64,000 nt of DNA from Diplonema japonicum (Eukaryota > Protista > Euglenozoa: Diplonemea): assembly GCA_964019335.1 (NCBI GenBank), contig OZ025707.1:186001-250000 (forward strand), written 5' to 3'. The notes under the pieces were generated by a model, which did no database searches, was not told the origin of the DNA, and saw only the letters and a list, made by a program, of their open reading frames with translations. Numbering within the stretch: the first letter of the stretch is position 1; every line of letters starts with the position of its first letter. The translations under genes were made by a program, and so were the position numbers. Below, in pieces: positions 2,082-59,700 of the stretch.

Positions 2082-3266
2082 ATGATGAGGTGTGGTCTCC
2101 TCCTGGCTGCGGCCTGTGCGGTGAGCGGTCTGTCCCTGTCGCCCGCGACGGACAAGGTTGTGAAGGATGAGTTCATCTTGTTGCTGCACTCGAACATCAC
2201 GGTGGCGGACCACGATGCGCTGAACGAGAGGGTGAAGGGGAGGAAGTTCTCTATCGGGAAGGGGTTTCGGGCGGTCCACGCGACTTTGAACGAGGAGTCC
2301 CTTGAGTGGGTGCTTGCTCAGGAGCACCTTGTGAAGAAGGTGGAGCACAACCAGGTGGTGCGCCTCGTGCAGGAGACCTGCAACGCGCAGCAGAGGGACG
2401 CGTCGTGGGGTCAGGCGAGGACCACGAACGCTGGGCCGCAGAACGTTGTGAACACCTTCGCGCACAACCCTGACTGGGGCAAGGACATCGACATCTACAT
2501 TGTTGACACCGGTATCAGGTGCACCCACGTTGACTTCAAGGACACCGAGGGGGAGAGCAGGTGCTTGTGGGGGGCGAACACCGCTGGCGGCAGCAACACC
2601 GATGTGAACGGACACGGGACCCACTGCGCCTCGACATCGGGCGGGATCCGCTACGGTATCGCAAAGGCCTCGACGCTGATCGCCGTGAAGGTGCTCGGGG
2701 ACAACGGTTCCGGGACAACGGCTGGTGTGATCGCCGGTGTGCAGTTCGTGGCGGACAACGCCGCCACAAGGAAGAAGAAGTCTGTTGCGAACATGTCGCT
2801 GGGAGGTGGCTTCAGCACGGCGTCGAACAACGCTGTCGACGCTGCTGTTGGCACCGGTGTTTCCTTCGCTGTGGCAGCCGGGAACGACAACGCTGACGCG
2901 AGGAACTACAGCCCCGCCAGTGCCAAGGACTGCGTCACCGTCGGCTCCACCGAGCTCGCCAACTCGGGCGGCACCCAGGTGGACGCACGCTCCAGCTTCT
3001 CCAACTACGGCAGCACCCTCGACATCTTCGCACCCGGCTCCAACATTGTGGCCGCGTACTCCACCTCCGACACCGCCTACGCCACCCTCTCCGGTACCTC
3101 CATGGCCTCCCCTCACGTTGCTGGTGCCATGGCTCTCTACGCCCAGACAAACAGCCCCGCTGAGGTCAAGAAGCTCCTCAACGACAACGCCGAGACTGGT
3201 ATCCTTCAGATCGGGACTGGGTCCCCGAACAAGATGCTTCACGTTCCTTGCATTAGCACCCGTTAA
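2082..3266 (+). CDS. Secreted subtilisin-like serine protease (S8A, proteinase K type) with I9 propeptide, copy 1
   Basis: Signal peptide; catalytic motifs IVDTG, GHGTHCA, GTSMASPHVAG; oxyanion AAGN; NMSLGG. Confidence 0.96.
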   Translation: MMRCGLLLAAACAVSGLSLSPATDKVVKDEFILLLHSNITVADHDALNERVKGRKFSIGKGFRAVHATLNEESLEWVLAQEHLVKKVEHNQVVRLVQETCNAQQRDASWGQARTTNAGPQNVVNTFAHNPDWGKDIDIYIVDTGIRCTHVDFKDTEGESRCLWGANTAGGSNTDVNGHGTHCASTSGGIRYGIAKASTLIAVKVLGDNGSGTTAGVIAGVQFVADNAATRKKKSVANMSLGGGFSTASNNAVDAAVGTGVSFAVAAGNDNADARNYSPASAKDCVTVGSTELANSGGTQVDARSSFSNYGSTLDIFAPGSNIVAAYSTSDTAYATLSGTSMASPHVAGAMALYAQTNSPAEVKKLLNDNAETGILQIGTGSPNKMLHVPCISTR

Positions 3267-3527: not shown

Positions 3528-4351
3528 GAACTTGAAGACCAAACAAAAACGTCTCCGGTTTTGTTGAATCTTTGGACGCAACAACAGAAGAGGGCATCCA
3601 AGTGTGTTTGTTCTTGTTGTGGGTGTGTTTGTGTATTTGTCAGTACGAATTTAACCAGACTTCCCAATCCTTCGTTCGAACATCTCTTTCCTATTCCTTC
3701 TTCTCTTTTCCCTCTTTCTTTCTCTGCAGTTTTACACGACTCGTATCTTATTTTTTCGAGTTCACATCCAATTAATCCCCAACACAGTCCCCTCTACCTG
3801 CACAACAACAACAACAACAACAACAACAAAGTATGGATCCGTCAGCTGCTGCGAACAACACCACCCTCACAAAAGAGGAGGGGAGGGTTGCCTTGGTGAG
3901 AGCTGTTTCAAAAGGGGACCTTGAGGAGATGAGGGAACTTGTTCTGGAGCGGGGTGTTGACCCTGGTGCAACGGGCAGCGATGGTTTCACAGCCCTGCAC
4001 TATGCAGCTCGCGAAAACAACTGTGTCGAGGCTGTGGCTGCTCTCGTCTCTTCTTACCACCAGGACCCTGGTGTGAAAAGCAGCGATGGTTGGACACCGG
4101 TTCATCTAGCAGCACAGGAAGGCCAGCTGGAAACAGTTAAATATCTTATTGAAACTTGCGGTAGCGACGTAGGTGTCAAAAACAACGACAGTAGGACACC
4201 GGTTCACGAAGCAGCAGTTAACGGCCATCTTGAGACGGTTAAATATCTTGTTGAAACTCTTGGTCAAGACGCTGGTGTCAAATGCAACTTAGGTTTTACA
4301 CCGCTTCATGATGCAGCATCAAACGGCCACCTGGAGACAGTTAAATATCTT

Positions 4352-4390
4352 AAAAAGTCTCGTTCCCGAAAAAAAAAGAGGAATGGAAAA
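4352..4390 (+). other. 39-bp A-rich in-frame insertion in an ankyrin repeat (also 13483-13521)
   Basis: KYL-KKSRSRKKKRNGK-LVKT interrupts the repeat consensus; ends A-run|CTTGTT like the two retro insertions; CTT is duplicated. Confidence 0.6.
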
Positions 4391-4602
4391 CTTGTTAAAA
4401 CTCGCGGTGGCAACAAAGGTGTGAGAAGCAACGACGGTTGGACACCGGTTCATCTAGCAGCAGAGTACGGCCACCTGGAGACTGTTAAATATCTTGTTAA
4501 AACTCTCGGTCAAGACGCTGGTGCGAAAAGCGAAGACGGTAGGACACCGATACATGAAGCAGCATTAGGAGGCCAGCTGGAGACTGTTAAATATCTTGTT
4601 GA

Positions 4603-7600
4603 CGGCGCAGCGAGGAGAAACAGGACGGAACGCGGATCGACAAGATCCTGCTCAATCAGGTGGCGGCAACAGGCCTGAGATCGTCGAGCACCGTGGAGAC
4701 CAGCTTCCCTCAACACTGTACGGTAACGGCGGAGCTGGGGACGGAGGCGTTCAGTCAGGCGTGCCTCGCATACAGGCTTCCGAAAGCCATCGACGTGGAC
4801 AGCTGGCCGACGTGGTCCAACGAGGAAGAGGACGAACTGGCGGAGGAGTGCGCACGGGGGTGTGAGGCGCCTTCCCCGGGGGTGGCAGGGGAGTGGGCTA
4901 ACGTGACGGCCGCCATGGAGGAATACCTGCTCCGAAGAGACAGCGAAGTGACCCACACGCGAGGGCATCGGGGAAGGGGTGCTCTCCGGGAACCGATTGT
5001 CTCGAAGGTGGCTGTCGAGACCCGGTGCAAAGGGAGCGGGGAAGCGACGCTGCGCCAGGTCCACGTCATGAAGGCGTTGAACAAGACGGGGGCCGTCCTG
5101 AGGATGATGAGGACAGCGGAGACGACGGGGATCGCACTCGCTGCGTTGCGGGAGCCGCGGAACGAGGCAAGTAGGTGTTGGGCCAATGCGAGAAGGCAGA
5201 GGACGCTCGCAGGCCCACACTTGCCGGACGACACACATGGCCAGTAGTACTTCCCTCTCGAGAACACATGGAAGGACTGGTACGTCTTGTGGGCGAGGTG
5301 GGAAGGAACCTCGCGGCCTCGGCAGCATCCGAGAAGATGAGGTCGTGGAGGGGGAGACTGGAGCGTGAGTTCCAGCGGGGAGGAACGCAGCTGGCGAGGA
5401 TGGTAAGGGGGGATGAACCGAGATGCGGCCTTACCATGCTGCGGCGAGACGACGGCTCGACGACAGCGGATGTGTCGGAGATAGACGATGCGTGCATCGA
5501 GGCGTGGGGTCCGGTCATGAGGATGTATGACCGCGACAACCCCGAGCCAGCATGGGCCCCTTTCGCGGAGCGTTTCGGGCGGTACGTGCCCCACCGAGAA
5601 CAAGAGCTGGACGACATCACCGCGGACGAGATTAGCGCGGTGCTGAAGACGAGGACGCGCGGGGCCTGTGGGGTGGACGGATGGCGGCTGAAGGAGCTGA
5701 AGAAGATACCAACACCGTTGCTCCAGAGGCTCGCACATTTCTATAACAGGGTGGAGGAGGAAGGGGCTTGGCCCCCAGCACTCATGACTGCGCTTGTGTC
5801 GCTCATTCCGAAGGGGGAAGGAAAACGACCGCTGCAACAACGTCCCATCACCGTGACGTCGCTGATCTACAGGACATGGGCCACGGTGCGCATGCGGAAG
5901 GTGCTACGATGGCAGGAGGAATGGATTCACCCCACGCAGAGTGGCTTCCGGAAGGGAAAGTCAACGTACAACACGGTGATGCAGATCTCGCTGCAGATCG
6001 AGGAGTCCCTCCTCACAGGGAAGCCGCTTCACGGCCTGGCCCTGGACTACGCCAAGTGCTTTGACAGGGTGCCGAGGGAGGTCACACTGAAGCTCCTGGA
6101 GACGATGGGAATGTCGGAACGAGTGCTGCGGCCTTTGAGAGCTGTCTACGGCGGGCTCCGGCGGAGGTTCAAGTACGCCCTGGGTGTGGGCCGTGCCTTT
6201 GAGACCACGAATGGTGTGCTACAGGGATGCCCCCTCTCCGTGGTGCTCATCAACGCGCTGATCAGTGTGTGGGCGCGAGCGATTGAGGGGGAGCATCCAG
6301 GCGTGCTCACACCTTCGTATGCGGATGACGGCTACCTGGTTTCTCTGGAAGGACATGCGAAGGTACAGGCGGCAGCCGACCTTACCAACGAGTTCTGCGT
6401 GCTCACTGGCATGGCACTGAACGAGGGGAAGACATTCGCCTTCAGCACGGCCAAGAAAGCGAAGAAGGTACGGAACAGCAGGACTGGAGGCCACTTCCCT
6501 GCGACAGAGAGGGTCGCGTGTTTGGGGTGCACGCTGGTGACCACGAATAGCGCGAGACAAGTCGATGAGCGAGTACGGGCGGCGACAAGGAGGGTCGCGA
6601 ACCTGGGAGGTGTCCCGCTTCCGTTCGACGTAAAGACGATGCTCCATGGATCGATCTGCACGAGCTCCGTCCTGTACAGCGCACCCTTCAACAGATGCAG
6701 TGCGGCCGCCAGGGTCGCGTACGTGGACGAGTCGGTGTTGAGCCTGTGGGGGCACGACACGGGGAGATCGAGGAGGTGCAACAAGGCGGTGCTGGTGGTT
6801 GCGGGGTACTCTCACCGCAACTACATGAACGTAGCGGAGCGGTACCGGAGGGTGCAGTTCGCTGCGGTGCAGTGCAGGAGAGATGCTGGTCTGGTGACGA
6901 GGCTGAACGAGGTGAAAGCCCTCTACGACAAGAGAGGCGTGTCACCTTCCGTTGCAGGGAACTATGCTGACGAACGGGGTCCGGTCGGCCTTCTGGTCGC
7001 CGACCTGAAGTCAGTGGGACTGATGTGGGAACACGACCTCCGGGCTCTGAGGACCGAGAACGGAGACGTGGTTGACCCCTTGGCCATGGAGCCACGCGAG
7101 TGGGAACACTATGTGCGCGTCCTGCTGAAGAAGCAGGCGTTTGCGGAGGTGGTGAAACTGAGGCCAGAATATGCCGGCATCGAAGGGGGCGTGGATTTTG
7201 TGGCGACGAACTCGCTCCGCAGGAAGACTGGCTCGTACGCTGTGCAGAGAAGCCTGCTGAAGATCGTGACGGCCGGGGTCGTGACGAACGACTACCTGTC
7301 ACACGCGAGCAGGGGGAACATCGGGGAGGAATGTGAGCTGTGCGAGAGTGGGGAAAGAGAGACCCGGGAACACCTGTGGTGGCACTGTGACGCCTACGCC
7401 GACATCCGTGCCGAATATGGACTCAACGCTGAGACTGCGGCGGGTTGGCCGAGCTGTCTGCGGACCCTGGGGGTGATGCCAAAGGACTTCAACACCGGAG
7501 ATCGCACCCTTCTCGCGGAGAAGGTGCAGGCGATGATGTGCGCGATCAACAGCAAGAGACTTTCCTTTGTGGACAACAAAAGAACCCTCCGCCTGCGGAC

Positions 7601-8765
7601 ACCGCCGTGGGATGCAGTGGCTGGGGTGCCGGGCACCAGGCACGAGTCCCCTTTTAGGGGCAAGTTGCCGGCGGGCGGGCTGTGGGTCTGGGACGCCAGT
7701 CATTTCTTGGCGCTGAACGACTGGCTGTCCATGCTCGAGTGGACGGACGAGGGGCAAATATCAAGTGTCGAGCTTGCCATCGACTACGAGGCGTTCTCGG
7801 GTCTTCGGATCGAGAAGACGGTAGGCTTCCGCCGCCGGACCGTAGGGACGACAGGGCCGCTGACCTTGAAAGAGAGAAGCGGTGAGCTTTACTTCATGCT
7901 GGAACGCATGAGAATGATGAGAGAGAGGTTTGGGAACGAGACCCCGCTGATACCGGCCGAGATGGGTCAAGTGACGTGCCTGGCGCGGGTGGGTGGCCCG
8001 CTGCAGCTCTACGGCTACAGGAGAAGGCCGCGGTTTGTGTCGATGGGCACGACCGCCGTCGTCGAGAAGATCCTGCAGAAGGGTGTGAGCGAGCTGTTGG
8101 CGGGTACGACGTGGGGGACTGGCCTCTACCCCGAGTACCCCGAGACCGACCACAGCGAGCAGCACTGGGCAGACCTTGTTGAGAGGCTGGAGGGGAGAGA
8201 GGACGAGGGAGCGGTGCAGGACCCTGTGTACTGCCCCCCGGGGGTGCTCACCTTTACAGGGACGCACTGGACCGGGAGCACCACGTGCAGGCGACATCGG
8301 AAGCCGAAATGCGACCGATGTGGGAACGCGCCGAAGAAGGCCGCGATTACCCTGGATGCGTGCTGCCGCGCGCACCACCACGAAGCGGATGGGCTGCCCG
8401 TGAGGGTATGCGAGGCCCACTCCATGACAGTTTGCGGGAAGTGTTCGTCGCTTGTGCGATGCTGCAAGAAGCACCATGTGTGCAAAAGGCATGCGGAGAG
8501 GACTTGCTCTATATGCAAGGAAGGGACGGAACTGGTGGACCGGTTACCGTCTGCTTGCTGTGCGAAGGGCCATCATGGCTAGCGGACCGCCAGGCCGCCC
8601 GAGCAGTGACTGCCTGAACAAGGCCGCGTCGCCGACGCAACGTCACCCTACACCCTGCACCCTGCACCCTACGTCCCTTTTCCTACACCCTCCCCTACAC
8701 CAGGAGAGGTGCGGCATCACGCACTCTTTCCGTCTCATACACAAAAAAAAAAAAAAAAAAAAAAA
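4603..8765 (+). mobile_element. 5'-truncated non-LTR retrotransposon (APE remnant-RT-zinc finger-C-terminal Cys/His fingers) with poly(A) tail and 8-bp TSD, copy 1
   Basis: TSD CTTGTTGA at 4595-4602 and 8766-8773; A23 tail 8743-8765; the first codons read TRIDKILLN...PQHCTVTAEL (resembles the end of an APE endonuclease); frameshift near the ACACAC run at ~5231. Confidence 0.93.
5175..8582 (+). CDS. Retrotransposon reverse transcriptase polyprotein (partial)
   Basis: LIPK, RPITV, QSGFRKG, LDYAKCFDRV, GVLQGCPLS, YADD; CELC..ETREHLWWHC zinc finger; three C-terminal Cys/His repeats. Confidence 0.93.
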   Translation: MLGQCEKAEDARRPTLAGRHTWPVVLPSREHMEGLVRLVGEVGRNLAASAASEKMRSWRGRLEREFQRGGTQLARMVRGDEPRCGLTMLRRDDGSTTADVSEIDDACIEAWGPVMRMYDRDNPEPAWAPFAERFGRYVPHREQELDDITADEISAVLKTRTRGACGVDGWRLKELKKIPTPLLQRLAHFYNRVEEEGAWPPALMTALVSLIPKGEGKRPLQQRPITVTSLIYRTWATVRMRKVLRWQEEWIHPTQSGFRKGKSTYNTVMQISLQIEESLLTGKPLHGLALDYAKCFDRVPREVTLKLLETMGMSERVLRPLRAVYGGLRRRFKYALGVGRAFETTNGVLQGCPLSVVLINALISVWARAIEGEHPGVLTPSYADDGYLVSLEGHAKVQAAADLTNEFCVLTGMALNEGKTFAFSTAKKAKKVRNSRTGGHFPATERVACLGCTLVTTNSARQVDERVRAATRRVANLGGVPLPFDVKTMLHGSICTSSVLYSAPFNRCSAAARVAYVDESVLSLWGHDTGRSRRCNKAVLVVAGYSHRNYMNVAERYRRVQFAAVQCRRDAGLVTRLNEVKALYDKRGVSPSVAGNYADERGPVGLLVADLKSVGLMWEHDLRALRTENGDVVDPLAMEPREWEHYVRVLLKKQAFAEVVKLRPEYAGIEGGVDFVATNSLRRKTGSYAVQRSLLKIVTAGVVTNDYLSHASRGNIGEECELCESGERETREHLWWHCDAYADIRAEYGLNAETAAGWPSCLRTLGVMPKDFNTGDRTLLAEKVQAMMCAINSKRLSFVDNKRTLRLRTPPWDAVAGVPGTRHESPFRGKLPAGGLWVWDASHFLALNDWLSMLEWTDEGQISSVELAIDYEAFSGLRIEKTVGFRRRTVGTTGPLTLKERSGELYFMLERMRMMRERFGNETPLIPAEMGQVTCLARVGGPLQLYGYRRRPRFVSMGTTAVVEKILQKGVSELLAGTTWGTGLYPEYPETDHSEQHWADLVERLEGREDEGAVQDPVYCPPGVLTFTGTHWTGSTTCRRHRKPKCDRCGNAPKKAAITLDACCRAHHHEADGLPVRVCEAHSMTVCGKCSSLVRCCKKHHVCKRHAERTCSICKEGTELVDRLPSACCAKGHHG

Positions 8766-9081
8766 CTTGTTGAAACTCTCGGTCAAGACGCAGGTGTCAA
8801 AACCAAAGACGGTTTTACACCGCTTCATGAAGCAGCATTAAAGGGCCAGCTGGAGACAGTTAAATATTTTGTTGAAACTCTCGGTCAAGACGCAGGTGTC
8901 AAAACCAACGAGGGTTGGGCACCGTTTCAACTAGCAGCATCAAGTGGCCAGCTGGAGACAGTAAAATATTTTGTTGAAACTCTCGGTCAAGACACAGGTG
9001 TCAAAAGCAACTACGGTTGCACACCGCTTCATGAAGCAGCATCAAGGGGCCACCTGGAGACAGTAAAATATCTTGTTGAAA

Positions 9082-9134
9082 GCAGGAGAGGTGCGGCATC
9101 ACGCACTCTTTCCGTTTCATGCAAAAAAAGAAAA
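9082..9134 (+). mobile_element. 53-bp extreme 5'-truncated copy of the same retrotransposon 3' end, 10-bp TSD, in frame (also 18213-18265)
   Basis: CAGGAGAGGTGCGGCATCACGCACTCTTTCCGT matches 8701-8733; decayed A tail; TSD CTTGTTGAAA at 9072-9081 and 9135-9144; 63 bp total = 21 codons. Confidence 0.9.
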
Positions 9135-10364
9135 CTTGTTGAAACTCGCGGTCAAGTCGCAGGTGTCAAGTGCAACTTAGGTTGGACACCGCTTCATGAA
9201 GCAGCATTCAAGGGCCATCTTGAGACGGTTAAATATCTTGTTGAAACTTGCGGTCAAGACGCAGGTGTCAAAAACAACGACGGTAGCACACCGGTTCATC
9301 TAGCGGCACAGGAAAGCCATCTCGAAACAATAAAATATCTTGTTGAAGAAAGAATAAAAGAAAAAGACTGGCGACAAGAAGGATAGAAAATAAAGTGTTC
9401 ACCAGTGTGATGTTCGAGAGGCACAATTTTCGTACTCTCCTATTTTTTTTTTTAATTTTTTTTTTATTTATTATTATTATTTTTTTTTTTTTTTGCATGA
9501 AGAAAAACAATCTATTGATACTGAATTGTTATTGCTAAAAAGAGTAGTGGTGGCATTGTAGGGCTTATCCTTCTACAGGTTAACCCCGGCTGTGCACAAA
9601 CGGCAATCAACCGACTCTTTTTTTTTGGAAGAAGTAAAAGAGAAGAAAAAAAAACTATAACTATCTTGTTTCAAATCGTACCTGTTTCTTTGTTGTAAAT
9701 GTGTCTCTCTCTCTTTTTTTTTTTTTTCTTTTTTTTTTTCTCTTTATTTATACTCGGTTGTTTTGTACACCAGGTACCCTTAACGTCATGAAAGACCCGA
9801 AGAGGGCGGGGTTCCTCAAGGACAGTGAAGAGACCACCTTTTTATTAGCAAGCCATTCAAGGCAGCAGGAAGAAAACAAATGAAGTGTAATCAAATAGAA
9901 GAACAGAAATTTTGATAAATTTCGGTGTGCGGGTGGGTGCTCACCGTTGTAGAAAAGAAAAATGAAAAAAGAAAGAAGTAGTAAACCCCCACAGGTGCAT
10001 CTTCAGGAGTTTCAGTCTTGAAGAAGAGAAAAGAAAAGAAAAAAAGAAGAAAAGAAAAGGGGGGAAAAAAAAAAGAAGAGAAGTGATTTCCTTTTGATCT
10101 TTCTTTTGTTGTTGTGTTTGATGTTTTTTTTTTTTTCTGATTAGAGTGGGTCTTTTTGTTTTTTCCCTCGCTCTCATCTTCTCTTGGAAAGAGAAAAATA
10201 AATAGAAAAGGGAGGGCCTCCGATGTTCAAAACCTAAATAGATTTTTTTTTTTTTTTTAACCAGGGGCAGAAGTTCGCCAAGAGTGTACAGTCCTGTTTC
10301 TCGCGGAAACAGAGAACCTACCCCCCACCCCCACAGCAGCCGACCAATCAGACACAGCAGTGTG

Positions 10365-10399
<35 letters not shown>

Positions 10400-11142
10400 C
10401 CCTTATTTAGAACAAAAGGAGAAAGGGAATAAAAAAAAAAGCAATTGTTTATCTTTCTTCTACTGCCTCCTTCTTTTGGGTACCAAAAAAGCTTTTCAGA
10501 AGGTCCAATACCGGCCAGGGGTGAGAGTGAGAGGACAACATGGAAGTCCGGTTCCCCGTGGTTTCATCCCCCATCCTCATTCTCGCTTTCCTCCCACCTC
10601 TTCATAGTTTACTGTTTCACGAGCGCTCCTTTTGTCGTTGTTGGACTTCAGGGTGAGCTGCTTATATTCCTTTCCTCCCGAGTTTCAGCCTTGTGAGCTG
10701 ACCATCAATATTCAATAGATTTTTTTTTTTTAAACCGGGGGCGGAGGCTCACATTCAGTTTACTTTTTTCATTTTTATTTTTATTAGGTTTGTCCTCCAC
10801 TTTGAGTTTTTATTTTTTATTATTTTTTTTTTCTTATTTTATTTTTTATTTCTATTCTTACTTTCATTTTTCATTTAATTTTACGTTTCATCCCGCTACC
10901 AGTCGTGGTCGCCAACAGCTCGCTCACACCCTTCTCCAGGATCTCCCTCCAGCATCTTGTCCGCGCAGCTGTCCGCGGCGGCGTCGTAGGCAGCGGCCTT
11001 TGCTTCCAACTTCGGTCGCATTTCGGCTTCCGGTGTGGCTTGTGCCACTCGCTGTAGTCAGTCTCGGGGTACTCGGGATAGAGGCCAGTCCCCACGTCTC
11101 ACACCCTTCTCGTAGGCAGCGGCCTTTGCTTCCAAAAACACA

Positions 11143-12658: not shown

Positions 12659-13733
12659 GAACTTGAAGACCAAACAAAAACGTCTCCGGTTTTGTTGAAT
12701 CTTTGGACGCAACAACAGAAGAGGGCATCCAAGTGTGTTTGTTCTTGTTGTGGGTGTGTTTGTGTATTTGTCAGTACGAATTTAACCAGACTTCCCAATC
12801 CTTCGTTCGAACATCTCTTTCCTATTCCTTCTTCTCTTTTCCCTCTTTCTTTCTCTGCAGTTTTACACGACTCGTATCTTATTTTTTCGAGTTCACATCC
12901 AATTAATCCCCAACACAGTCCCCTCTACCTGCACAACAACAACAACAACAACAACAACAAAGTATGGATCCGTCAGCTGCTGCGAACAACACCACCCTCA
13001 CAAAAGAGGAGGGGAGGGTTGCCTTGGTGAGAGCTGTTTCAAAAGGGGACCTTGAGGAGATGAGGGAACTTGTTCTGGAGCGGGGTGTTGACCCTGGTGC
13101 AACGGGCAGCGATGGTTTCACAGCCCTGCACTATGCAGCTCGCGAAAACAACTGTGTCGAGGCTGTGGCTGCTCTCGTCTCTTCTTACCACCAGGACCCT
13201 GGTGTGAAAAGCAGCGATGGTTGGACACCGGTTCATCTAGCAGCACAGGAAGGCCAGCTGGAAACAGTTAAATATCTTATTGAAACTTGCGGTAGCGACG
13301 TAGGTGTCAAAAACAACGACAGTAGGACACCGGTTCACGAAGCAGCAGTTAACGGCCATCTTGAGACGGTTAAATATCTTGTTGAAACTCTTGGTCAAGA
13401 CGCTGGTGTCAAATGCAACTTAGGTTTTACACCGCTTCATGATGCAGCATCAAACGGCCACCTGGAGACAGTTAAATATCTTAAAAAGTCTCGTTCCCGA
13501 AAAAAAAAGAGGAATGGAAAACTTGTTAAAACTCGCGGTGGCAACAAAGGTGTGAGAAGCAACGACGGTTGGACACCGGTTCATCTAGCAGCAGAGTACG
13601 GCCACCTGGAGACTGTTAAATATCTTGTTAAAACTCTCGGTCAAGACGCTGGTGCGAAAAGCGAAGACGGTAGGACACCGATACATGAAGCAGCATTAGG
13701 AGGCCAGCTGGAGACTGTTAAATATCTTGTTGA

Positions 13734-16700
13734 CGGCGCAGCGAGGAGAAACAGGACGGAACGCGGATCGACAAGATCCTGCTCAATCAGGTGGCGGCAA
13801 CAGGCCTGAGATCGTCGAGCACCGTGGAGACCAGCTTCCCTCAACACTGTACGGTAACGGCGGAGCTGGGGACGGAGGCGTTCAGTCAGGCGTGCCTCGC
13901 ATACAGGCTTCCGAAAGCCATCGACGTGGACAGCTGGCCGACGTGGTCCAACGAGGAAGAGGACGAACTGGCGGAGGAGTGCGCACGGGGGTGTGAGGCG
14001 CCTTCCCCGGGGGTGGCAGGGGAGTGGGCTAACGTGACGGCCGCCATGGAGGAATACCTGCTCCGAAGAGACAGCGAAGTGACCCACACGCGAGGGCATC
14101 GGGGAAGGGGTGCTCTCCGGGAACCGATTGTCTCGAAGGTGGCTGTCGAGACCCGGTGCAAAGGGAGCGGGGAAGCGACGCTGCGCCAGGTCCACGTCAT
14201 GAAGGCGTTGAACAAGACGGGGGCCGTCCTGAGGATGATGAGGACAGCGGAGACGACGGGGATCGCACTCGCTGCGTTGCGGGAGCCGCGGAACGAGGCA
14301 AGTAGGTGTTGGGCCAATGCGAGAAGGCAGAGGACGCTCGCAGGCCCACACTTGCCGGACGACACACATGGCCAGTAGTACTTCCCTCTCGAGAACACAT
14401 GGAAGGACTGGTACGTCTTGTGGGCGAGGTGGGAAGGAACCTCGCGGCCTCGGCAGCATCCGAGAAGATGAGGTCGTGGAGGGGGAGACTGGAGCGTGAG
14501 TTCCAGCGGGGAGGAACGCAGCTGGCGAGGATGGTAAGGGGGGATGAACCGAGATGCGGCCTTACCATGCTGCGGCGAGACGACGGCTCGACGACAGCGG
14601 ATGTGTCGGAGATAGACGATGCGTGCATCGAGGCGTGGGGTCCGGTCATGAGGATGTATGACCGCGACAACCCCGAGCCAGCATGGGCCCCTTTCGCGGA
14701 GCGTTTCGGGCGGTACGTGCCCCACCGAGAACAAGAGCTGGACGACATCACCGCGGACGAGATTAGCGCGGTGCTGAAGACGAGGACGCGCGGGGCCTGT
14801 GGGGTGGACGGATGGCGGCTGAAGGAGCTGAAGAAGATACCAACACCGTTGCTCCAGAGGCTCGCACATTTCTATAACAGGGTGGAGGAGGAAGGGGCTT
14901 GGCCCCCAGCACTCATGACTGCGCTTGTGTCGCTCATTCCGAAGGGGGAAGGAAAACGACCGCTGCAACAACGTCCCATCACCGTGACGTCGCTGATCTA
15001 CAGGACATGGGCCACGGTGCGCATGCGGAAGGTGCTACGATGGCAGGAGGAATGGATTCACCCCACGCAGAGTGGCTTCCGGAAGGGAAAGTCAACGTAC
15101 AACACGGTGATGCAGATCTCGCTGCAGATCGAGGAGTCCCTCCTCACAGGGAAGCCGCTTCACGGCCTGGCCCTGGACTACGCCAAGTGCTTTGACAGGG
15201 TGCCGAGGGAGGTCACACTGAAGCTCCTGGAGACGATGGGAATGTCGGAACGAGTGCTGCGGCCTTTGAGAGCTGTCTACGGCGGGCTCCGGCGGAGGTT
15301 CAAGTACGCCCTGGGTGTGGGCCGTGCCTTTGAGACCACGAATGGTGTGCTACAGGGATGCCCCCTCTCCGTGGTGCTCATCAACGCGCTGATCAGTGTG
15401 TGGGCGCGAGCGATTGAGGGGGAGCATCCAGGCGTGCTCACACCTTCGTATGCGGATGACGGCTACCTGGTTTCTCTGGAAGGACATGCGAAGGTACAGG
15501 CGGCAGCCGACCTTACCAACGAGTTCTGCGTGCTCACTGGCATGGCACTGAACGAGGGGAAGACATTCGCCTTCAGCACGGCCAAGAAAGCGAAGAAGGT
15601 ACGGAACAGCAGGACTGGAGGCCACTTCCCTGCGACAGAGAGGGTCGCGTGTTTGGGGTGCACGCTGGTGACCACGAATAGCGCGAGACAAGTCGATGAG
15701 CGAGTACGGGCGGCGACAAGGAGGGTCGCGAACCTGGGAGGTGTCCCGCTTCCGTTCGACGTAAAGACGATGCTCCATGGATCGATCTGCACGAGCTCCG
15801 TCCTGTACAGCGCACCCTTCAACAGATGCAGTGCGGCCGCCAGGGTCGCGTACGTGGACGAGTCGGTGTTGAGCCTGTGGGGGCACGACACGGGGAGATC
15901 GAGGAGGTGCAACAAGGCGGTGCTGGTGGTTGCGGGGTACTCTCACCGCAACTACATGAACGTAGCGGAGCGGTACCGGAGGGTGCAGTTCGCTGCGGTG
16001 CAGTGCAGGAGAGATGCTGGTCTGGTGACGAGGCTGAACGAGGTGAAAGCCCTCTACGACAAGAGAGGCGTGTCACCTTCCGTTGCAGGGAACTATGCTG
16101 ACGAACGGGGTCCGGTCGGCCTTCTGGTCGCCGACCTGAAGTCAGTGGGACTGATGTGGGAACACGACCTCCGGGCTCTGAGGACCGAGAACGGAGACGT
16201 GGTTGACCCCTTGGCCATGGAGCCACGCGAGTGGGAACACTATGTGCGCGTCCTGCTGAAGAAGCAGGCGTTTGCGGAGGTGGTGAAACTGAGGCCAGAA
16301 TATGCCGGCATCGAAGGGGGCGTGGATTTTGTGGCGACGAACTCGCTCCGCAGGAAGACTGGCTCGTACGCTGTGCAGAGAAGCCTGCTGAAGATCGTGA
16401 CGGCCGGGGTCGTGACGAACGACTACCTGTCACACGCGAGCAGGGGGAACATCGGGGAGGAATGTGAGCTGTGCGAGAGTGGGGAAAGAGAGACCCGGGA
16501 ACACCTGTGGTGGCACTGTGACGCCTACGCCGACATCCGTGCCGAATATGGACTCAACGCTGAGACTGCGGCGGGTTGGCCGAGCTGTCTGCGGACCCTG
16601 GGGGTGATGCCAAAGGACTTCAACACCGGAGATCGCACCCTTCTCGCGGAGAAGGTGCAGGCGATGATGTGCGCGATCAACAGCAAGAGACTTTCCTTTG

Positions 16701-17896
16701 TGGACAACAAAAGAACCCTCCGCCTGCGGACACCGCCGTGGGATGCAGTGGCTGGGGTGCCGGGCACCAGGCACGAGTCCCCTTTTAGGGGCAAGTTGCC
16801 GGCGGGCGGGCTGTGGGTCTGGGACGCCAGTCATTTCTTGGCGCTGAACGACTGGCTGTCCATGCTCGAGTGGACGGACGAGGGGCAAATATCAAGTGTC
16901 GAGCTTGCCATCGACTACGAGGCGTTCTCGGGTCTTCGGATCGAGAAGACGGTAGGCTTCCGCCGCCGGACCGTAGGGACGACAGGGCCGCTGACCTTGA
17001 AAGAGAGAAGCGGTGAGCTTTACTTCATGCTGGAACGCATGAGAATGATGAGAGAGAGGTTTGGGAACGAGACCCCGCTGATACCGGCCGAGATGGGTCA
17101 AGTGACGTGCCTGGCGCGGGTGGGTGGCCCGCTGCAGCTCTACGGCTACAGGAGAAGGCCGCGGTTTGTGTCGATGGGCACGACCGCCGTCGTCGAGAAG
17201 ATCCTGCAGAAGGGTGTGAGCGAGCTGTTGGCGGGTACGACGTGGGGGACTGGCCTCTACCCCGAGTACCCCGAGACCGACCACAGCGAGCAGCACTGGG
17301 CAGACCTTGTTGAGAGGCTGGAGGGGAGAGAGGACGAGGGAGCGGTGCAGGACCCTGTGTACTGCCCCCCGGGGGTGCTCACCTTTACAGGGACGCACTG
17401 GACCGGGAGCACCACGTGCAGGCGACATCGGAAGCCGAAATGCGACCGATGTGGGAACGCGCCGAAGAAGGCCGCGATTACCCTGGATGCGTGCTGCCGC
17501 GCGCACCACCACGAAGCGGATGGGCTGCCCGTGAGGGTATGCGAGGCCCACTCCATGACAGTTTGCGGGAAGTGTTCGTCGCTTGTGCGATGCTGCAAGA
17601 AGCACCATGTGTGCAAAAGGCATGCGGAGAGGACTTGCTCTATATGCAAGGAAGGGACGGAACTGGTGGACCGGTTACCGTCTGCTTGCTGTGCGAAGGG
17701 CCATCATGGCTAGCGGACCGCCAGGCCGCCCGAGCAGTGACTGCCTGAACAAGGCCGCGTCGCCGACGCAACGTCACCCTACACCCTGCACCCTGCACCC
17801 TACGTCCCTTTTCCTACACCCTCCCCTACACCAGGAGAGGTGCGGCATCACGCACTCTTTCCGTCTCATACACAAAAAAAAAAAAAAAAAAAAAAA
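13734..17896 (+). mobile_element. 5'-truncated non-LTR retrotransposon, copy 2 (duplicated with the tandem unit)
   Basis: Same 5' junction, frameshift, tail and TSD as 4603-8765. Confidence 0.93.
14306..17713 (+). CDS. Retrotransposon reverse transcriptase polyprotein (partial), copy 2
   Basis: Translation identical to 5175..8582. Confidence 0.93.
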   Translation: MLGQCEKAEDARRPTLAGRHTWPVVLPSREHMEGLVRLVGEVGRNLAASAASEKMRSWRGRLEREFQRGGTQLARMVRGDEPRCGLTMLRRDDGSTTADVSEIDDACIEAWGPVMRMYDRDNPEPAWAPFAERFGRYVPHREQELDDITADEISAVLKTRTRGACGVDGWRLKELKKIPTPLLQRLAHFYNRVEEEGAWPPALMTALVSLIPKGEGKRPLQQRPITVTSLIYRTWATVRMRKVLRWQEEWIHPTQSGFRKGKSTYNTVMQISLQIEESLLTGKPLHGLALDYAKCFDRVPREVTLKLLETMGMSERVLRPLRAVYGGLRRRFKYALGVGRAFETTNGVLQGCPLSVVLINALISVWARAIEGEHPGVLTPSYADDGYLVSLEGHAKVQAAADLTNEFCVLTGMALNEGKTFAFSTAKKAKKVRNSRTGGHFPATERVACLGCTLVTTNSARQVDERVRAATRRVANLGGVPLPFDVKTMLHGSICTSSVLYSAPFNRCSAAARVAYVDESVLSLWGHDTGRSRRCNKAVLVVAGYSHRNYMNVAERYRRVQFAAVQCRRDAGLVTRLNEVKALYDKRGVSPSVAGNYADERGPVGLLVADLKSVGLMWEHDLRALRTENGDVVDPLAMEPREWEHYVRVLLKKQAFAEVVKLRPEYAGIEGGVDFVATNSLRRKTGSYAVQRSLLKIVTAGVVTNDYLSHASRGNIGEECELCESGERETREHLWWHCDAYADIRAEYGLNAETAAGWPSCLRTLGVMPKDFNTGDRTLLAEKVQAMMCAINSKRLSFVDNKRTLRLRTPPWDAVAGVPGTRHESPFRGKLPAGGLWVWDASHFLALNDWLSMLEWTDEGQISSVELAIDYEAFSGLRIEKTVGFRRRTVGTTGPLTLKERSGELYFMLERMRMMRERFGNETPLIPAEMGQVTCLARVGGPLQLYGYRRRPRFVSMGTTAVVEKILQKGVSELLAGTTWGTGLYPEYPETDHSEQHWADLVERLEGREDEGAVQDPVYCPPGVLTFTGTHWTGSTTCRRHRKPKCDRCGNAPKKAAITLDACCRAHHHEADGLPVRVCEAHSMTVCGKCSSLVRCCKKHHVCKRHAERTCSICKEGTELVDRLPSACCAKGHHG

Positions 17897-19495
17897 CTTG
17901 TTGAAACTCTCGGTCAAGACGCAGGTGTCAAAACCAAAGACGGTTTTACACCGCTTCATGAAGCAGCATTAAAGGGCCAGCTGGAGACAGTTAAATATTT
18001 TGTTGAAACTCTCGGTCAAGACGCAGGTGTCAAAACCAACGAGGGTTGGGCACCGTTTCAACTAGCAGCATCAAGTGGCCAGCTGGAGACAGTAAAATAT
18101 TTTGTTGAAACTCTCGGTCAAGACACAGGTGTCAAAAGCAACTACGGTTGCACACCGCTTCATGAAGCAGCATCAAGGGGCCACCTGGAGACAGTAAAAT
18201 ATCTTGTTGAAAGCAGGAGAGGTGCGGCATCACGCACTCTTTCCGTTTCATGCAAAAAAAGAAAACTTGTTGAAACTCGCGGTCAAGTCGCAGGTGTCAA
18301 GTGCAACTTAGGTTGGACACCGCTTCATGAAGCAGCATTCAAGGGCCATCTTGAGACGGTTAAATATCTTGTTGAAACTTGCGGTCAAGACGCAGGTGTC
18401 AAAAACAACGACGGTAGCACACCGGTTCATCTAGCGGCACAGGAAAGCCATCTCGAAACAATAAAATATCTTGTTGAAGAAAGAATAAAAGAAAAAGACT
18501 GGCGACAAGAAGGATAGAAAATAAAGTGTTCACCAGTGTGATGTTCGAGAGGCACAATTTTCGTACTCTCCTATTTTTTTTTTTAATTTTTTTTTTATTT
18601 ATTATTATTATTTTTTTTTTTTTTTGCATGAAGAAAAACAATCTATTGATACTGAATTGTTATTGCTAAAAAGAGTAGTGGTGGCATTGTAGGGCTTATC
18701 CTTCTACAGGTTAACCCCGGCTGTGCACAAACGGCAATCAACCGACTCTTTTTTTTTGGAAGAAGTAAAAGAGAAGAAAAAAAAACTATAACTATCTTGT
18801 TTCAAATCGTACCTGTTTCTTTGTTGTAAATGTGTCTCTCTCTCTTTTTTTTTTTTTTCTTTTTTTTTTTCTCTTTATTTATACTCGGTTGTTTTGTACA
18901 CCAGGTACCCTTAACGTCATGAAAGACCCGAAGAGGGCGGGGTTCCTCAAGGACAGTGAAGAGACCACCTTTTTATTAGCAAGCCATTCAAGGCAGCAGG
19001 AAGAAAACAAATGAAGTGTAATCAAATAGAAGAACAGAAATTTTGATAAATTTCGGTGTGCGGGTGGGTGCTCACCGTTGTAGAAAAGAAAAATGAAAAA
19101 AGAAAGAAGTAGTAAACCCCCACAGGTGCATCTTCAGGAGTTTCAGTCTTGAAGAAGAGAAAAGAAAAGAAAAAAAGAAGAAAAGAAAAGGGGGGAAAAA
19201 AAAAAGAAGAGAAGTGATTTCCTTTTGATCTTTCTTTTGTTGTTGTGTTTGATGTTTTTTTTTTTTTCTGATTAGAGTGGGTCTTTTTGTTTTTTCCCTC
19301 GCTCTCATCTTCTCTTGGAAAGAGAAAAATAAATAGAAAAGGGAGGGCCTCCGATGTTCAAAACCTAAATAGATTTTTTTTTTTTTTTTAACCAGGGGCA
19401 GAAGTTCGCCAAGAGTGTACAGTCCTGTTTCTCGCGGAAACAGAGAACCTACCCCCCACCCCCACAGCAGCCGACCAATCAGACACAGCAGTGTG

Positions 19496-19530
<35 letters not shown>

Positions 19531-20273
19531 CCCTTATTTAGAACAAAAGGAGAAAGGGAATAAAAAAAAAAGCAATTGTTTATCTTTCTTCTACTGCCTC
19601 CTTCTTTTGGGTACCAAAAAAGCTTTTCAGAAGGTCCAATACCGGCCAGGGGTGAGAGTGAGAGGACAACATGGAAGTCCGGTTCCCCGTGGTTTCATCC
19701 CCCATCCTCATTCTCGCTTTCCTCCCACCTCTTCATAGTTTACTGTTTCACGAGCGCTCCTTTTGTCGTTGTTGGACTTCAGGGTGAGCTGCTTATATTC
19801 CTTTCCTCCCGAGTTTCAGCCTTGTGAGCTGACCATCAATATTCAATAGATTTTTTTTTTTTAAACCGGGGGCGGAGGCTCACATTCAGTTTACTTTTTT
19901 CATTTTTATTTTTATTAGGTTTGTCCTCCACTTTGAGTTTTTATTTTTTATTATTTTTTTTTTCTTATTTTATTTTTTATTTCTATTCTTACTTTCATTT
20001 TTCATTTAATTTTACGTTTCATCCCGCTACCAGTCGTGGTCGCCAACAGCTCGCTCACACCCTTCTCCAGGATCTCCCTCCAGCATCTTGTCCGCGCAGC
20101 TGTCCGCGGCGGCGTCGTAGGCAGCGGCCTTTGCTTCCAACTTCGGTCGCATTTCGGCTTCCGGTGTGGCTTGTGCCACTCGCTGTAGTCAGTCTCGGGG
20201 TACTCGGGATAGAGGCCAGTCCCCACGTCTCACACCCTTCTCGTAGGCAGCGGCCTTTGCTTCCAAAAACACA

Positions 20274-56700: not shown

Positions 56701-59700
56701 GTTCCTTGATGACATCGGCGAAACAGTGCAGGTCCTGGTGCGTGTGGACCCGAAGATTATCGCTGTGCACAAGTTGCAGAACAGCGTTGTCCAAGCAAGT
56801 GGACTGTCATGCAGGGTGTCCCCACCTGGCTTCCTGCAGGACATCAGGGAAGTTGGGCTGTACCACAATGAGCCCGTGAAGCTGGCGTCCTCGGAGCACG
56901 ATCTCGCTGTCTTGTTTGATGAACCTTTTGCCTTTGGAGTCAGCGCAAAGCAGCAGGACAGGTACGGCAACGTAGCATGGGACGCCGGTGAGCGCTACGG
57001 CGTGGTTGGGTGCAAGCTGGAGCGCAACTACGTAAAGAGCGGTGCCATCGAGGACACCCTCTACGGTGCCCCTACAACCGACCAAGCCGCTCGGGTAGAA
57101 CTGCGCGTCAGCGGCACCATCAGCACCTTTAATTCTGCTGCTTATGCCGCAGACTTTGCAACGATCGCCGGTGTGGACCCTAGTACCGTCACAATCATCA
57201 GCATCACTGAGGTCACAGGTGACCCGTCCGTTGCTTCTGCAAGCCAGGGCAGGAATCTGCTGCAGGTGGTGACGTACCTCGTCGTCGTCATCGAATTGAA
57301 AGTGCCGGATGCCACGAAGGTCTTGAGTGAGTACGTCACATTCGTGGCGGACGTCGTCAGCAGATGTGACCCGGTTACAGGAACGCCAGAGCAATGTTGT
57401 GTGCGTGGTGCGCAGAATAAGTTAACCTGCTTAGGTGGTTCGCAGTGCACCAGTAACTGTGTGCTGGCTGTACCTGTACAGAAAATCGTTCCCGGCACAC
57501 CACCAGTCTCTATTCCGCAAGCAACACCGGTGGCAACGCCTGTGGCTACACCTAAAGACCCGAAAGTTACACCAGTTGCCACACCGGAAGCAACACCCGT
57601 TGCCACCCCTGTGGTCACACCTGTGACAACGCCTGTGGCTACACCGCAAACGACACCAGTTGTTACACCCGTTGCTACACCTGTGGTCACACCTGTGACA
57701 ACTCCTGTGGCTACACCGCAAGCGACACCAGTTATTACACCTGTGGCCACGCCGCAAGCAACACCTGTTGTTACACCTGTTGATACACCTGCTGTGGTGC
57801 CTGACGGCAACGCCCCTGAAGCATCGCCATTTCTGAATGACACGTCACCCGACTCAGCACCAGACGACTCGCCTCTCATGAATGACACGACGCCGTCCGA
57901 CGTGCCCGATGACAACTCCACAACACCGAACGCCTCCGAATCAATGGCAGGGGGGAGGAACTTGCTGCAGTTCCAATCGCCAGCTGATGCTTACTTCGCG
58001 CAGCATGAGCTCGAACGGGGCCTTACCAACGCGTTGCTCACGCCGCATCCTGTCTCTGGTGAGTACCCTAAGAAGGAGTTCTACGTCCCGCAGCTGCTGA
58101 TGGGGATGAAGACAGACTTGACCACCGCCCTTGGGTCCTCGTCATACTTCAAGGGACAGTTGTGGTTCAGACAGTCATTCACAAGGATGATGCAGGGGAC
58201 TTTCACGCTGATGACGACATGCGAGAGGTTGTCACCCGGGCAGCTGCGCATCGACGACCCGCAGGCACCCGCGAGCTACAGAGTGGAGACGGGCAAGGTG
58301 GATGTTGTGCCTAACATGATCTCGATTGTGAAGGCACCCGGCGCAGATCAATGCCGTAGAGCAGGCGATGCATTCTCCTTTACAGCTAGGCTGCTGCTTG
58401 CATCAGGGGAGACCCCCTCTGTAGCACCTGCAAACGTAAATCTAGTAGTGTCCATTGGTGGCGAATCAAAGAAAACAGGCCCGTTCAGCTGCAACGACAT
58501 TGTTCGGGACGCCAGAGGGGAGTACGAGACAGTGTGCACCATGAACACGAACAGTGCACCTCTCAATCAACGGATCCCTGGGTTGGCATCTTCTTACGCC
58601 CCGGAAGGGGGAGGGACTGGTCTGGACAGGAACGACAGGTGGACCTCAACGGACCCGATCACGGAGGTTATAATGCAGGAGGACGCGGACTCGGAGTCCA
58701 GGACGTACTCGTCGGCGATGCTCGGCACTGCAATCACTTTCATCCCTGCATGTGCTAGCAAGATGACTATCTTCGATGAGCCGCCACACGAGGTTGTCGT
58801 GCACAAACCTTTCACAGTCGGTCTTCAGCTTGAGGACACCTACGGAAACGTGGGTGGGTCTTACGTTGTTCGCATGGTGGCATACTCAGCAGACCCAACA
58901 GCTGGTGGTCAGTGGCCCAATGCCGTCAACCCTGCAGCAACTGCTGTGGATATTCAGTCTTCGCTGCTTGATGGCGGCTCTGCGTACAACGACGCACCGA
59001 CCGTCCTTGGAAAGCTGCAGTACCACGACCTGTTCCTTGAGTCTTCGTTCTTGAAGAAATTAGGCAGCAGCTCTCAAGGCTATGTGTGGCTTGTTGCGTA
59101 CGTTCTTCCGTCGTCGGGGACAGGCTGCGACGGTGATTGCGACCCTTATGCCCAGACAGGCCATGCTTGCTCTGCTGCAGGCAACACCCGAACAGCATCC
59201 TTTGGCTGTCTGTACCATGTCTTCGCACCAGTGCTTGTGACGCCCGATGTGCCGGCGAGATGCGAATTTTTGCAGTACCCCAGCTACTTCACAAGCGGCA
59301 TGACCGCGGGACACGAGTATGGGGAAACTTTCAAAGCGAGGGTTCTTGACAAATACGGGCTCCCCATTCACGAGTTAAGCCCCTCGATGTCGGGCGACTT
59401 GCTGCTCCTCCAAGGCACCTCGTCCCTGCACAAGGGGTACGAGTTTGAAAGCTACGACAGCGCTGCGATACTCACTTCGTTTTACGCGGAGAGCTCGCTG
59501 AGGCTCACACACACCACTGCGGTGGACACCAGTGGGGGTGATGTCTTGTTGCGTGTGTGGGTCCGCTTCCCAACCATCTCAAGAGGCATCGCGCAGAGCA
59601 TCCTCAGCATCAGGAACCCCACGACAAGCCTGGCCGCAACTGTTGACTGGGAGCCCATTGCATCCCCCAACCCGGGGAGGGAGAAACTCCAACAGGTGAT

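Follow-up and report, generated by a model that had tools for sequence, protein, structure and literature searches.

Can a retrotransposon use the coding sequence of a protein repeat as the address for its insertion? The question is raised by an ankyrin-repeat gene at positions 3833-9386 (+ strand) of a 64,000-nucleotide stretch of the Diplonema japonicum genome (contig OZ025707.1, positions 186,001 to 250,000), here called the window. An intronless open reading frame (ORF) built of 102-bp units is split there by a long interspersed nuclear element (LINE), i.e. a retrotransposon lacking long terminal repeats (non-LTR), and an earlier note on this DNA had proposed that the family of this element targets one nucleotide of the ankyrin-coding unit. 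We have examined the three interruptions of the gene, and searched the genome for further copies. The LINE family is sequence-specific, with most independent copies at one nucleotide and in one orientation.

By direct reading of the window the ankyrin ORF is interrupted three times at one shared register. The 3' junction of all three inserts is AAATAT^CTTGTT, falling between the codons for K-Y and those for L-V-E in the 102-bp unit. The long insertion is a 5'-truncated LINE copy of 4,163 bp (4603-8765, +) that starts inside the domain for an apurinic endonuclease-like (APE) activity. It is flanked by directly read target-site duplications (TSDs) of CTTGTTGA at 4595-4602 and 8766-8773 (both +). 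The 5' part of the gene in the ORF list extends from 3833 to 4602 (+) and includes the 5' TSD (Pfam Ank_2, 3e-83), and the frame resumes at the 3' TSD in the 3' part (8766-9386, +; Ank_2, 9e-44). The second insert is a 5'-truncated short copy of 53 bp (9082-9134, +) between directly read TSDs of CTTGTTGAAA (9072-9081 and 9135-9144, both +). It comprises one extra G, the last 40 nucleotides of the 3' untranslated region (UTR) of the element, with its hairpin, its 3' end and two substitutions, and a decayed A tail that reads AAAAAAAGAAAA. The third is an old, A-rich, in-frame insert of 39 bp (4352-4390, +). Its layout is CTT, insert, CTTGTTAAAAC, so that it ends directly before CTTGTTAAAAC at the canonical site.

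These readings bear out what had been claimed for the locus, both for the joining of the 4.16-kb element and the 53-bp copy through their poly(A) at AAATAT^ in different repeats, and for the ending of the 39-bp insert at the same register. The claim that the 53-bp copy is independent of the long one also holds. The short copy is older, with its decayed tail and two substitutions, and is present in paralogs that lack the long insertion. The 53-bp insertion event is common to about seven paralogous ankyrin genes on contig C60, and a genome search places the 39-bp insert at 10 paralogous sites of the same contig and nowhere else. Each of the two is a single old event that has spread through gene duplication. 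The 39-bp insert is probably a very short retrocopy, whose source was not found in the genome search.

The 3' UTR of the element (8583-8742) was used as query for a search of the genome, which measures 62.5 Mb in 132 contigs; our evidence as a whole comes from this one assembly and from public runs at contig level. The 3' UTR was found at 21 places on contigs C60, C31, C105, C68, C72 and C112. On collapsing duplicates 14 distinct events are left, and 13 of these lie at TAAATAT^YTNRTYGAAAC in ankyrin repeats; the duplex context of the target site is ...GAGACAGTTAAATATCTTGTTGAAACTCGC.... Nearly every copy of the 3' UTR is followed by poly(A) and then by CTNGTNGAAAC in an ankyrin repeat. The genome-wide check of the 3' flanks suggested in the earlier note thus returned poly(A) followed by the ankyrin site for most copies, and not unrelated sequence. 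The on-target events (n = 13) comprise copies of 7.4 kb, 4.36 kb, 4.16 kb and 183 bp, eight copies of approximately 42 nucleotides and one 5' fragment. All the insertions are in the sense orientation with respect to the ankyrin ORF. Their tails are event-specific, having from 16 to about 70 A nucleotides, and their TSDs of 8-11 bp track the local variant of the repeat (CTTGTTGAAAC, CTTATTGAAA, CTCGTCGAAAC, CTCGTTGAAA, ATTGTTGAAA and others). The 5' junctions differ by extra nucleotides, with a filler of about 50 nucleotides in one case. The 100-nucleotide 3' flanks are 46-89% alike between events, which therefore sit in different repeats. The 14th event, on contig C112, is off-target with a TSD of its own (AGTTAAAG), and is what rare mis-targeting by a real retrotransposition system looks like.

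This distribution cannot have arisen by chance. The target pattern AAATAYYTNRTYGAAA has 221 matches in the 62.5 Mb, compared with five for a reversed control, and with a preceding A10 there are 21 matches genome-wide compared with one in the control. Those of the A10 matches that lie in an ankyrin context are all retrocopies, and the rest are chance matches. With about 220 oriented sites in 1.25e8 strand positions, a random insertion would hit a site with p ~2e-6, and 13 of 14 events did so. A looser junction pattern (A5 + YTNRTYGAAAY) gave six new candidates, all of which proved on fetching to be chance matches outside ankyrin sequence; for pure tails the stricter list has probably missed little. 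As a negative control we took 26 copies of five related LINE families (33-37% amino acid identity) from the same genome. Their flanks are diverse and unrelated, and these families are not site-specific.

What kind of element is this? Within the long insertion of the window an APE C-terminal remnant with a linker (4660-5247, +; from the ORF list) lies in a frame different from that of the reverse transcriptase (RT), and is collinear with the Exo_endo_phos-positive ORF of a full-length copy. An open frame of 1,135 amino acids (5175-8582, +) contains the RT, a CCHC knuckle and a Cys/His-rich tail. The RT domain lies at about 5817-6527 with YADD at 6318 (Pfam RVT_1, 3.6e-20), while the CCHC knuckle (7332-7388), a conserved W..W..ELAxD region (7683-7790) and the tail of three CxxC...CCxxHH units (8286-8576) are recognized by their motifs, all on the + strand. 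The 3' UTR (8583-8742, +), of which the last 42 nucleotides are the unit found in all the short copies, leads into a directly read poly(A) tail of pure A23 (8743-8765, +).

Two copies on contig C31 match the window element with 99.4-99.6% identity along its whole length of 4,163 bp, and extend further 5', into the APE domain, ORF1 and a 5' head. One of them provides the full-length copy whose recovery had been proposed for this family; it is APE-type and about 7.4 kb in length (C31:298169-305582, TSD CTTGTTGAAAC). The other, of 4.36 kb, is truncated 200 bp further 5' than the window copy and has the TSD CTTATTGAAA. The order in the full-length copy is the 5' head, ORF1 and then ORF2, in which a 2A-like peptide (...AGDVERNPGP, with the core DVERNPGP, in the context ...LLLLAGDVERNPGP...; L055 ORF 2951-4120) precedes the APE endonuclease (L055:2951-4117; Exo_endo_phos 27.9 bits against a cut-off of 24.5). 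The nearest solved relative of the RT is human L1 ORF2p (4.5e-19, compared with 3e-9 for R2). This, together with the APE domain, marks the element by its predicted domains as an APE-type non-LTR retrotransposon, and a 3' poly(A), variable 5' truncation and TSDs are all present in the family. The copies differ by one-nucleotide indels at window positions 4878, 5160 and 5237 and by a nine-nucleotide indel at 5892-5900. The element and its +G variant at 5237 are also present in the contigs of independent public runs. An ORF 100% identical to that of the element (P0001) comes from a public transcriptome assembly, and the family is therefore transcribed.

The 446 amino acids that follow the RT were modeled with moderate confidence (pLDDT 75), the Cys/His tail at low confidence, and in the predicted model the CCHC/linker part alone resembles LINE proteins, its fold being similar to those of R2 and L1 ORF2p (Z 7-9). 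A winged-helix DNA-binding domain was considered for post-RT residues ~148-268 and rejected, as the weak fold match (Z 3.4-3.9) is not evidence for one. RNase H downstream of the RT gave no Pfam match at E<=1 and was not among the fold matches of the same model. The sole signal resembling a restriction-like endonuclease after the RT was an insignificant match to Mrr_cat (E 0.19), below the cut-off. Among public protein sets the element comes closest to LINEs of Diplonema papillatum, with 32-38% identity. One D. papillatum protein, P0033 (835 amino acids), has an RT of this LINE lineage with C-terminal ankyrin repeats (Pfam), joined at a position that is not a 3' end. It may point to an association of LINEs with ankyrin in another species, or be an artifact of the gene model.

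The source of the specificity is indicated by other RNAs that have arrived at the same nucleotide. Family B, a non-coding poly(A) retroposon of about 560 bp that is unrelated to the LINE, is found at the ankyrin site three times. The copies on C72 and C116 are full length and share the same 5' end, that on C68 is 5'-truncated, and each has a CTTRTYGAAA(C) duplication. A fourth copy, different at its 5' end, lies elsewhere on C11. Family B was also considered as a known structured RNA, and had no Rfam match at E<=0.1. At C60:40264 the 3' end of an abundant dispersed repeat, which we call repeat 'C', is present once with a poly(A) tail at the ankyrin site. None of its 19 other copies is in ankyrin sequence and many have no poly(A), so that we rejected repeat 'C' as a second targeted family; the single case is best read as a passenger. 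The 39-bp insert of the window fits the same picture. These passenger RNAs share with the LINE only the poly(A) tail. Since unrelated poly(A) RNAs are found at one nucleotide, it is probably the protein machinery that selects the site, rather than pairing between RNA and target. Within this genome no family but the ankyrin-targeting one has the Cys/His-rich C-terminal domain, and among the families examined this LINE alone ends in poly(A) and is site-specific. The correlation of the domain with site specificity is suggestive, with n = 1.

The passengers bear directly on an RNA-guided alternative, in which ankyrin sequence carried in read-through transcripts would anneal to other repeats, by homology-assisted target-primed reverse transcription or by recombination of the cDNA. 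With elements such as R1 and R2 the reaction is positioned with the help of downstream target sequence present in the RNA, and as the elements here lie in the sense orientation inside transcribed repeats chimeric transcripts are likely. Yet 16-70 nucleotides of poly(A) always intervene between element and target, with no ankyrin sequence in the tail, and the passengers (family B and the tail of repeat 'C') reach the same nucleotide without any ankyrin sequence. Moreover the fixed positions of the TSDs indicate two staggered nicks. We consider RNA guidance to be improbable.

We give even less credence to an origin from one or a few insertions, the rest being generated by gene conversion, unequal crossing-over and segmental duplication with no target specificity. 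Duplication has contributed to the count of copies, in that the 4.16-kb copy occurs in both of two identical 9.1-kb tandem units and the 53-bp and 39-bp inserts are common to 7-10 paralogous genes of C60, but 13 events are left after these have been collapsed, and they differ in 5' ends, in the length of the tail and in the extra nucleotides that the 5' junction carries. The TSDs correspond to the local variant of the repeat, and the events are distributed over six contigs with flanks only 46-89% alike. Two unrelated poly(A) sequences occupy the same nucleotide, and the off-target copy has a normal TSD. Spread by duplication is thus already largely refuted. Least likely of all is random or AT-preferring insertion with survival only in dispensable ankyrin repeats. 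Gene-dense co-transcribed genomes do purge most insertions and the short in-frame copies look filtered by selection, but with 102 positions in two orientations open in every 102-bp repeat such filtering cannot account for a precision of one nucleotide at 13 of 14 events, and related LINE families have survived in this genome at many places that are unrelated.

We return to the LINE as a sequence-specific, APE-type element, the machinery of which very probably nicks the antisense strand of one subfamily of ankyrin repeats at the predicted site. The nick would occur at 5'-GTTTCRAYNAR^ATATTTA-3' (...CAAG^ATAT...), corresponding to TAAATAT^YTNRTYGAAAC on the sense strand, between the K-Y and the L-V/I-E codons. 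The exposed 3'-OH (...CAACAAG) would prime reverse transcription on the poly(A) tail without base pairing; that this end is unable to pair with poly(A) had been correctly stated in the earlier note. The TSDs suggest that the sense strand is cut 8-11 nucleotides downstream, after GAAA(C), giving the CTNGTNGAAA(C) duplication. Specificity would reside in the protein of the element, either in the APE endonuclease or in the family-specific Cys/His-rich C-terminal domain, and not in homology between RNA and target. The approximately 220 similar repeats would provide a target that is multicopy and individually dispensable, i.e. a safe harbor.

The element is probably expressed by read-through transcription from the host, trans-splicing and polyadenylation, given its sense orientation in a co-transcribed gene array and its leader-derived 5' head. 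The full-length copy begins with stuttered partial repeats of ...CTGTACTTTATTG (L055:570-640), and by its resemblance to kinetoplastid leaders CTGTACTTTATTG may be the 3' part of the spliced leader. Other LINE families of the genome start in a similar way, with a CTGTACTTTATTG head of variable length (such heads, of this family and others, lie also at L094:100-140 and L095-L098), and a 5' UTR motif after the head (GYYGCTCCCCGTGGCYRATAARG...AACGGGG) is conserved between LINE families, being about 82% alike. The five related families (ORFs of 1,370-1,780 amino acids; L026-L051, e.g. L040:4296-4380 and L027:4251-4320) do not end in poly(A). They have a 3' UTR of about 50 nucleotides followed by an oligo(T) run of approximately 5-30 T and then unrelated flanks, reflecting either U-tails or integration at T-tracts.

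Several points weigh against this account of a working, protein-directed system. No copy in the assembly has an intact ORF2. Between the APE and RT parts one-nucleotide indels distinguish the three long copies, and the full-length copy has a broken ORF1. Present activity is unproven, since all the long copies seen have broken frames. Several of the apparent copies are duplicates that arose by gene or segmental duplication, and an empty-site allele or joint was not seen in the public runs, for which there are contigs only. The Cys/His domain is also present in many D. papillatum LINEs, and its assignment as the part that reads the DNA is a guess. The model of spliced-leader addition and read-through is plausible, resting as it does on sequence resemblance.

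Most copies of the family are mini-copies of about 42 nucleotides, consisting of a hairpin plus tail. The hairpin is predicted at the 3' terminus of the RNA (8703-8731, +), with an 11-bp stem and a six-nucleotide loop (-17.8 kcal/mol, z -5.0), and none of 200 shuffled sequences was equally stable. Eight independent short copies start at almost the same position, to within a few nucleotides, and this position is the 5' base of the hairpin, so that the minimal mobilized unit is the hairpin plus 13 nucleotides and the tail. Given the predominance of these mini-copies the RT appears to recognize the hairpin, or to pause there. The common start point may reflect binding of RT at the hairpin, or template switching just after it. 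We also considered that the short copies might be RNAs trans-spliced from the AG before the hairpin, and rejected this. Several keep CAG upstream of that AG, and none has the spliced leader.

The consequences for the host gene differ between the inserts. The long insertion truncates the ankyrin ORF, the frame of which enters the element and stops at 4678. The 53 nucleotides of the short copy plus its 10-nucleotide TSD add 63 nucleotides in frame, equivalent to 21 codons (...VESRRGAASRTLSVSCKKRKLVET...), and the 39-nucleotide insert adds 13 codons, also in frame (...KYLKKSRSRKKKRNGKLVKT...). Both in-frame inserts have been carried through several gene duplications, which is compatible with tolerated, and possibly expressed, protein variants. 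A bolder interpretation, which we offer as a tentative and rather doubtful one, is that the protein is an integrase-like machine with a specificity for about 16-18 bp of coding repeat, pasting any polyadenylated RNA at a codon boundary, and that in-frame mini-insertions (of hairpin and A tail, translated as Lys/Arg-rich linkers) and other short retrocopies are kept, duplicated and expressed in ankyrin genes. If this were true the LINE would continually supply a family of host proteins with structural variants, and would depend on host read-through and spliced-leader trans-splicing with no promoter of its own.

The interrupted locus lies inside a tandem duplication of 9,131 bp. A second copy of the whole interrupted gene is present at 12964-18517 (+) with 0 mismatches over 5,554 nucleotides, and is the same event duplicated, not an independent insertion. 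The duplication is possibly very recent, or it may have arisen in the assembly. The 9,131-bp unit, repeated within positions 1-20500 of the window, comprises a subtilisin-like protease gene (2083-3266) and the ankyrin gene with the LINE, and is present as two full units plus partial ones; many further subtilisin/ankyrin paralogs lie upstream on contig C60. Directly upstream of each subtilisin gene there is an inverted, rearranged fragment (1770-1961 on the - strand, 10902-11093 and 20033-20224) that matches positions 8068-8175 of the element, immediately ahead of the Cys/His tail, with 85-91% identity. This fragment was probably left long ago by a related element that lay outside an ankyrin context. 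At C60:26492-27780 (L094+L099) the ankyrin-targeting LINE is represented by a 5' fragment that lacks about 1 kb internally and breaks off in ORF1, where it runs into the middle of a subtilisin gene, ...GTGTGCAG being joined to TTCGTGGCGGAC.... This is apparently a deletion or recombination between the element and the neighboring gene, in which the 3' part of the element was lost. A short palindromic element resembling a miniature inverted-repeat transposable element (478-575, with ends CATAATTTAACTC...GAGTTAAATTATG) recurs at several loci, also flanking L045 and L075, with the adjoining motif AATAGYTATTTATTGCCAACAA. Further away, a very long coding region rich in GC takes up about 36-64 kb of the window, and within it a 12-nucleotide periodic repeat at 57499-57810 encodes runs of the tetrapeptide (T/A)P(V/Q)x.

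Sequence-specific LINEs are models for the way in which selfish DNA finds 'safe' multicopy targets, and are under development as programmable insertion tools. The ankyrin-targeting family provides a new natural example for the evolution of specificity in APE-type LINEs, with unspecific sister families in the same genome, and its retrocopies have become fixed within host proteins with the frame preserved. Few eukaryotes of the sea are as abundant as the diplonemids, and hardly any of their mobile elements have been described. The paper on the D. papillatum genome reports about 2,500 retroelement gene models and makes no mention of targeting (PMC10161547). Full-text literature searches combining ankyrin with non-LTR or site-specific elements found nothing relevant.

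How does the family compare with known systems? The surveyed targets of sequence-specific LINEs comprise ribosomal DNA, telomeric repeats, genes for snRNA, 5S RNA and tRNA, microsatellites and other transposons, with no protein-coding repeat (PMC5035012). In that respect the statement of the earlier note that this class of target was undescribed is upheld. It has to be qualified by the coding-region hot spots that multigene families of kinetoplastids, a neighboring group, contain, which are a precedent (PMC7563717, PMC5814959). RHS genes are a hot spot within coding regions for ingi/RIME, and in Trypanosoma cruzi for L1Tc/NARTc, with pseudogenes as the result (PMC7563717), and ingi and L1Tc carry an N-terminal 2A-like peptide (PMC3708506).

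The closest of the known systems are ingi/RIME of Trypanosoma brucei and L1Tc/NARTc of T. cruzi. Like the diplonemid family these are APE-type, poly(A)-tailed LINEs of Euglenozoa with a 2A-like peptide, inserting at one position in the coding region of a multigene family, creating pseudogenes and sharing the site with non-autonomous partners. The 2A-like peptide is also found in other LINE clades, and so is not diagnostic for the ingi/L1Tc clade. The diplonemid family is the stricter, with 13 of 14 events at one nucleotide, whereas the site specificity of ingi/L1Tc is 'relative', with a degenerate upstream pattern and many copies outside RHS (PMC5814959). Its target is an intragenic tandem ankyrin unit with many sites per gene, in contrast to the single site per RHS gene. 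It also has no detectable RNase H and belongs to a diplonemid LINE lineage, the nearest relatives found being LINEs of D. papillatum. The link to the RHS hot spot of trypanosomes suggests that coding-region hot spots are a wider habit of Euglenozoa. TcTREZO of T. cruzi is likewise a site-specific repeated element located mostly in genes and pseudogenes of a protein-coding multigene family, MASP, the pseudogenes above all (PMC5814959). Unlike the diplonemid LINE it is composite and non-autonomous, being built of genomic pieces, with no APE/RT machinery shown to direct its targeting.

Two further groups share the strictness of the diplonemid family. R2, CRE/SLACS/CZAR, NeSL and Utopia have strict specificity for multicopy genes and are co-transcribed with the host target; SLACS and CZAR reside in the spliced-leader genes of related protists (PMC5814959). 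These elements have a PD-(D/E)xK endonuclease after the RT and no APE, whereas the diplonemid APE precedes the RT, and the diplonemid RT is closer to L1 ORF2p than to R2. The APE-type LINEs of the R1 clade and the Tx1 group (R1, TRAS, SART, Tx1L, Keno, Mutsu, Dewa and others) share with the diplonemid family the APE endonuclease, nucleotide precision and a multicopy target. Some of these have poly(A) tails and prime without pairing between tail and target. Their targets, however, exclude protein-coding repeats (PMC5035012). The diplonemid family is therefore not categorically new, being an APE-type sequence-specific LINE with a new class of target, which adds a protein-coding tandem repeat to the RNA genes, telomeres and microsatellites already known as site-specific targets. 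Three points set it apart from the known systems: the use of a protein-domain repeat as the multicopy target, nucleotide precision with an endonuclease that is APE-type and not restriction-like, and the delivery of unrelated poly(A) RNAs to the same site.

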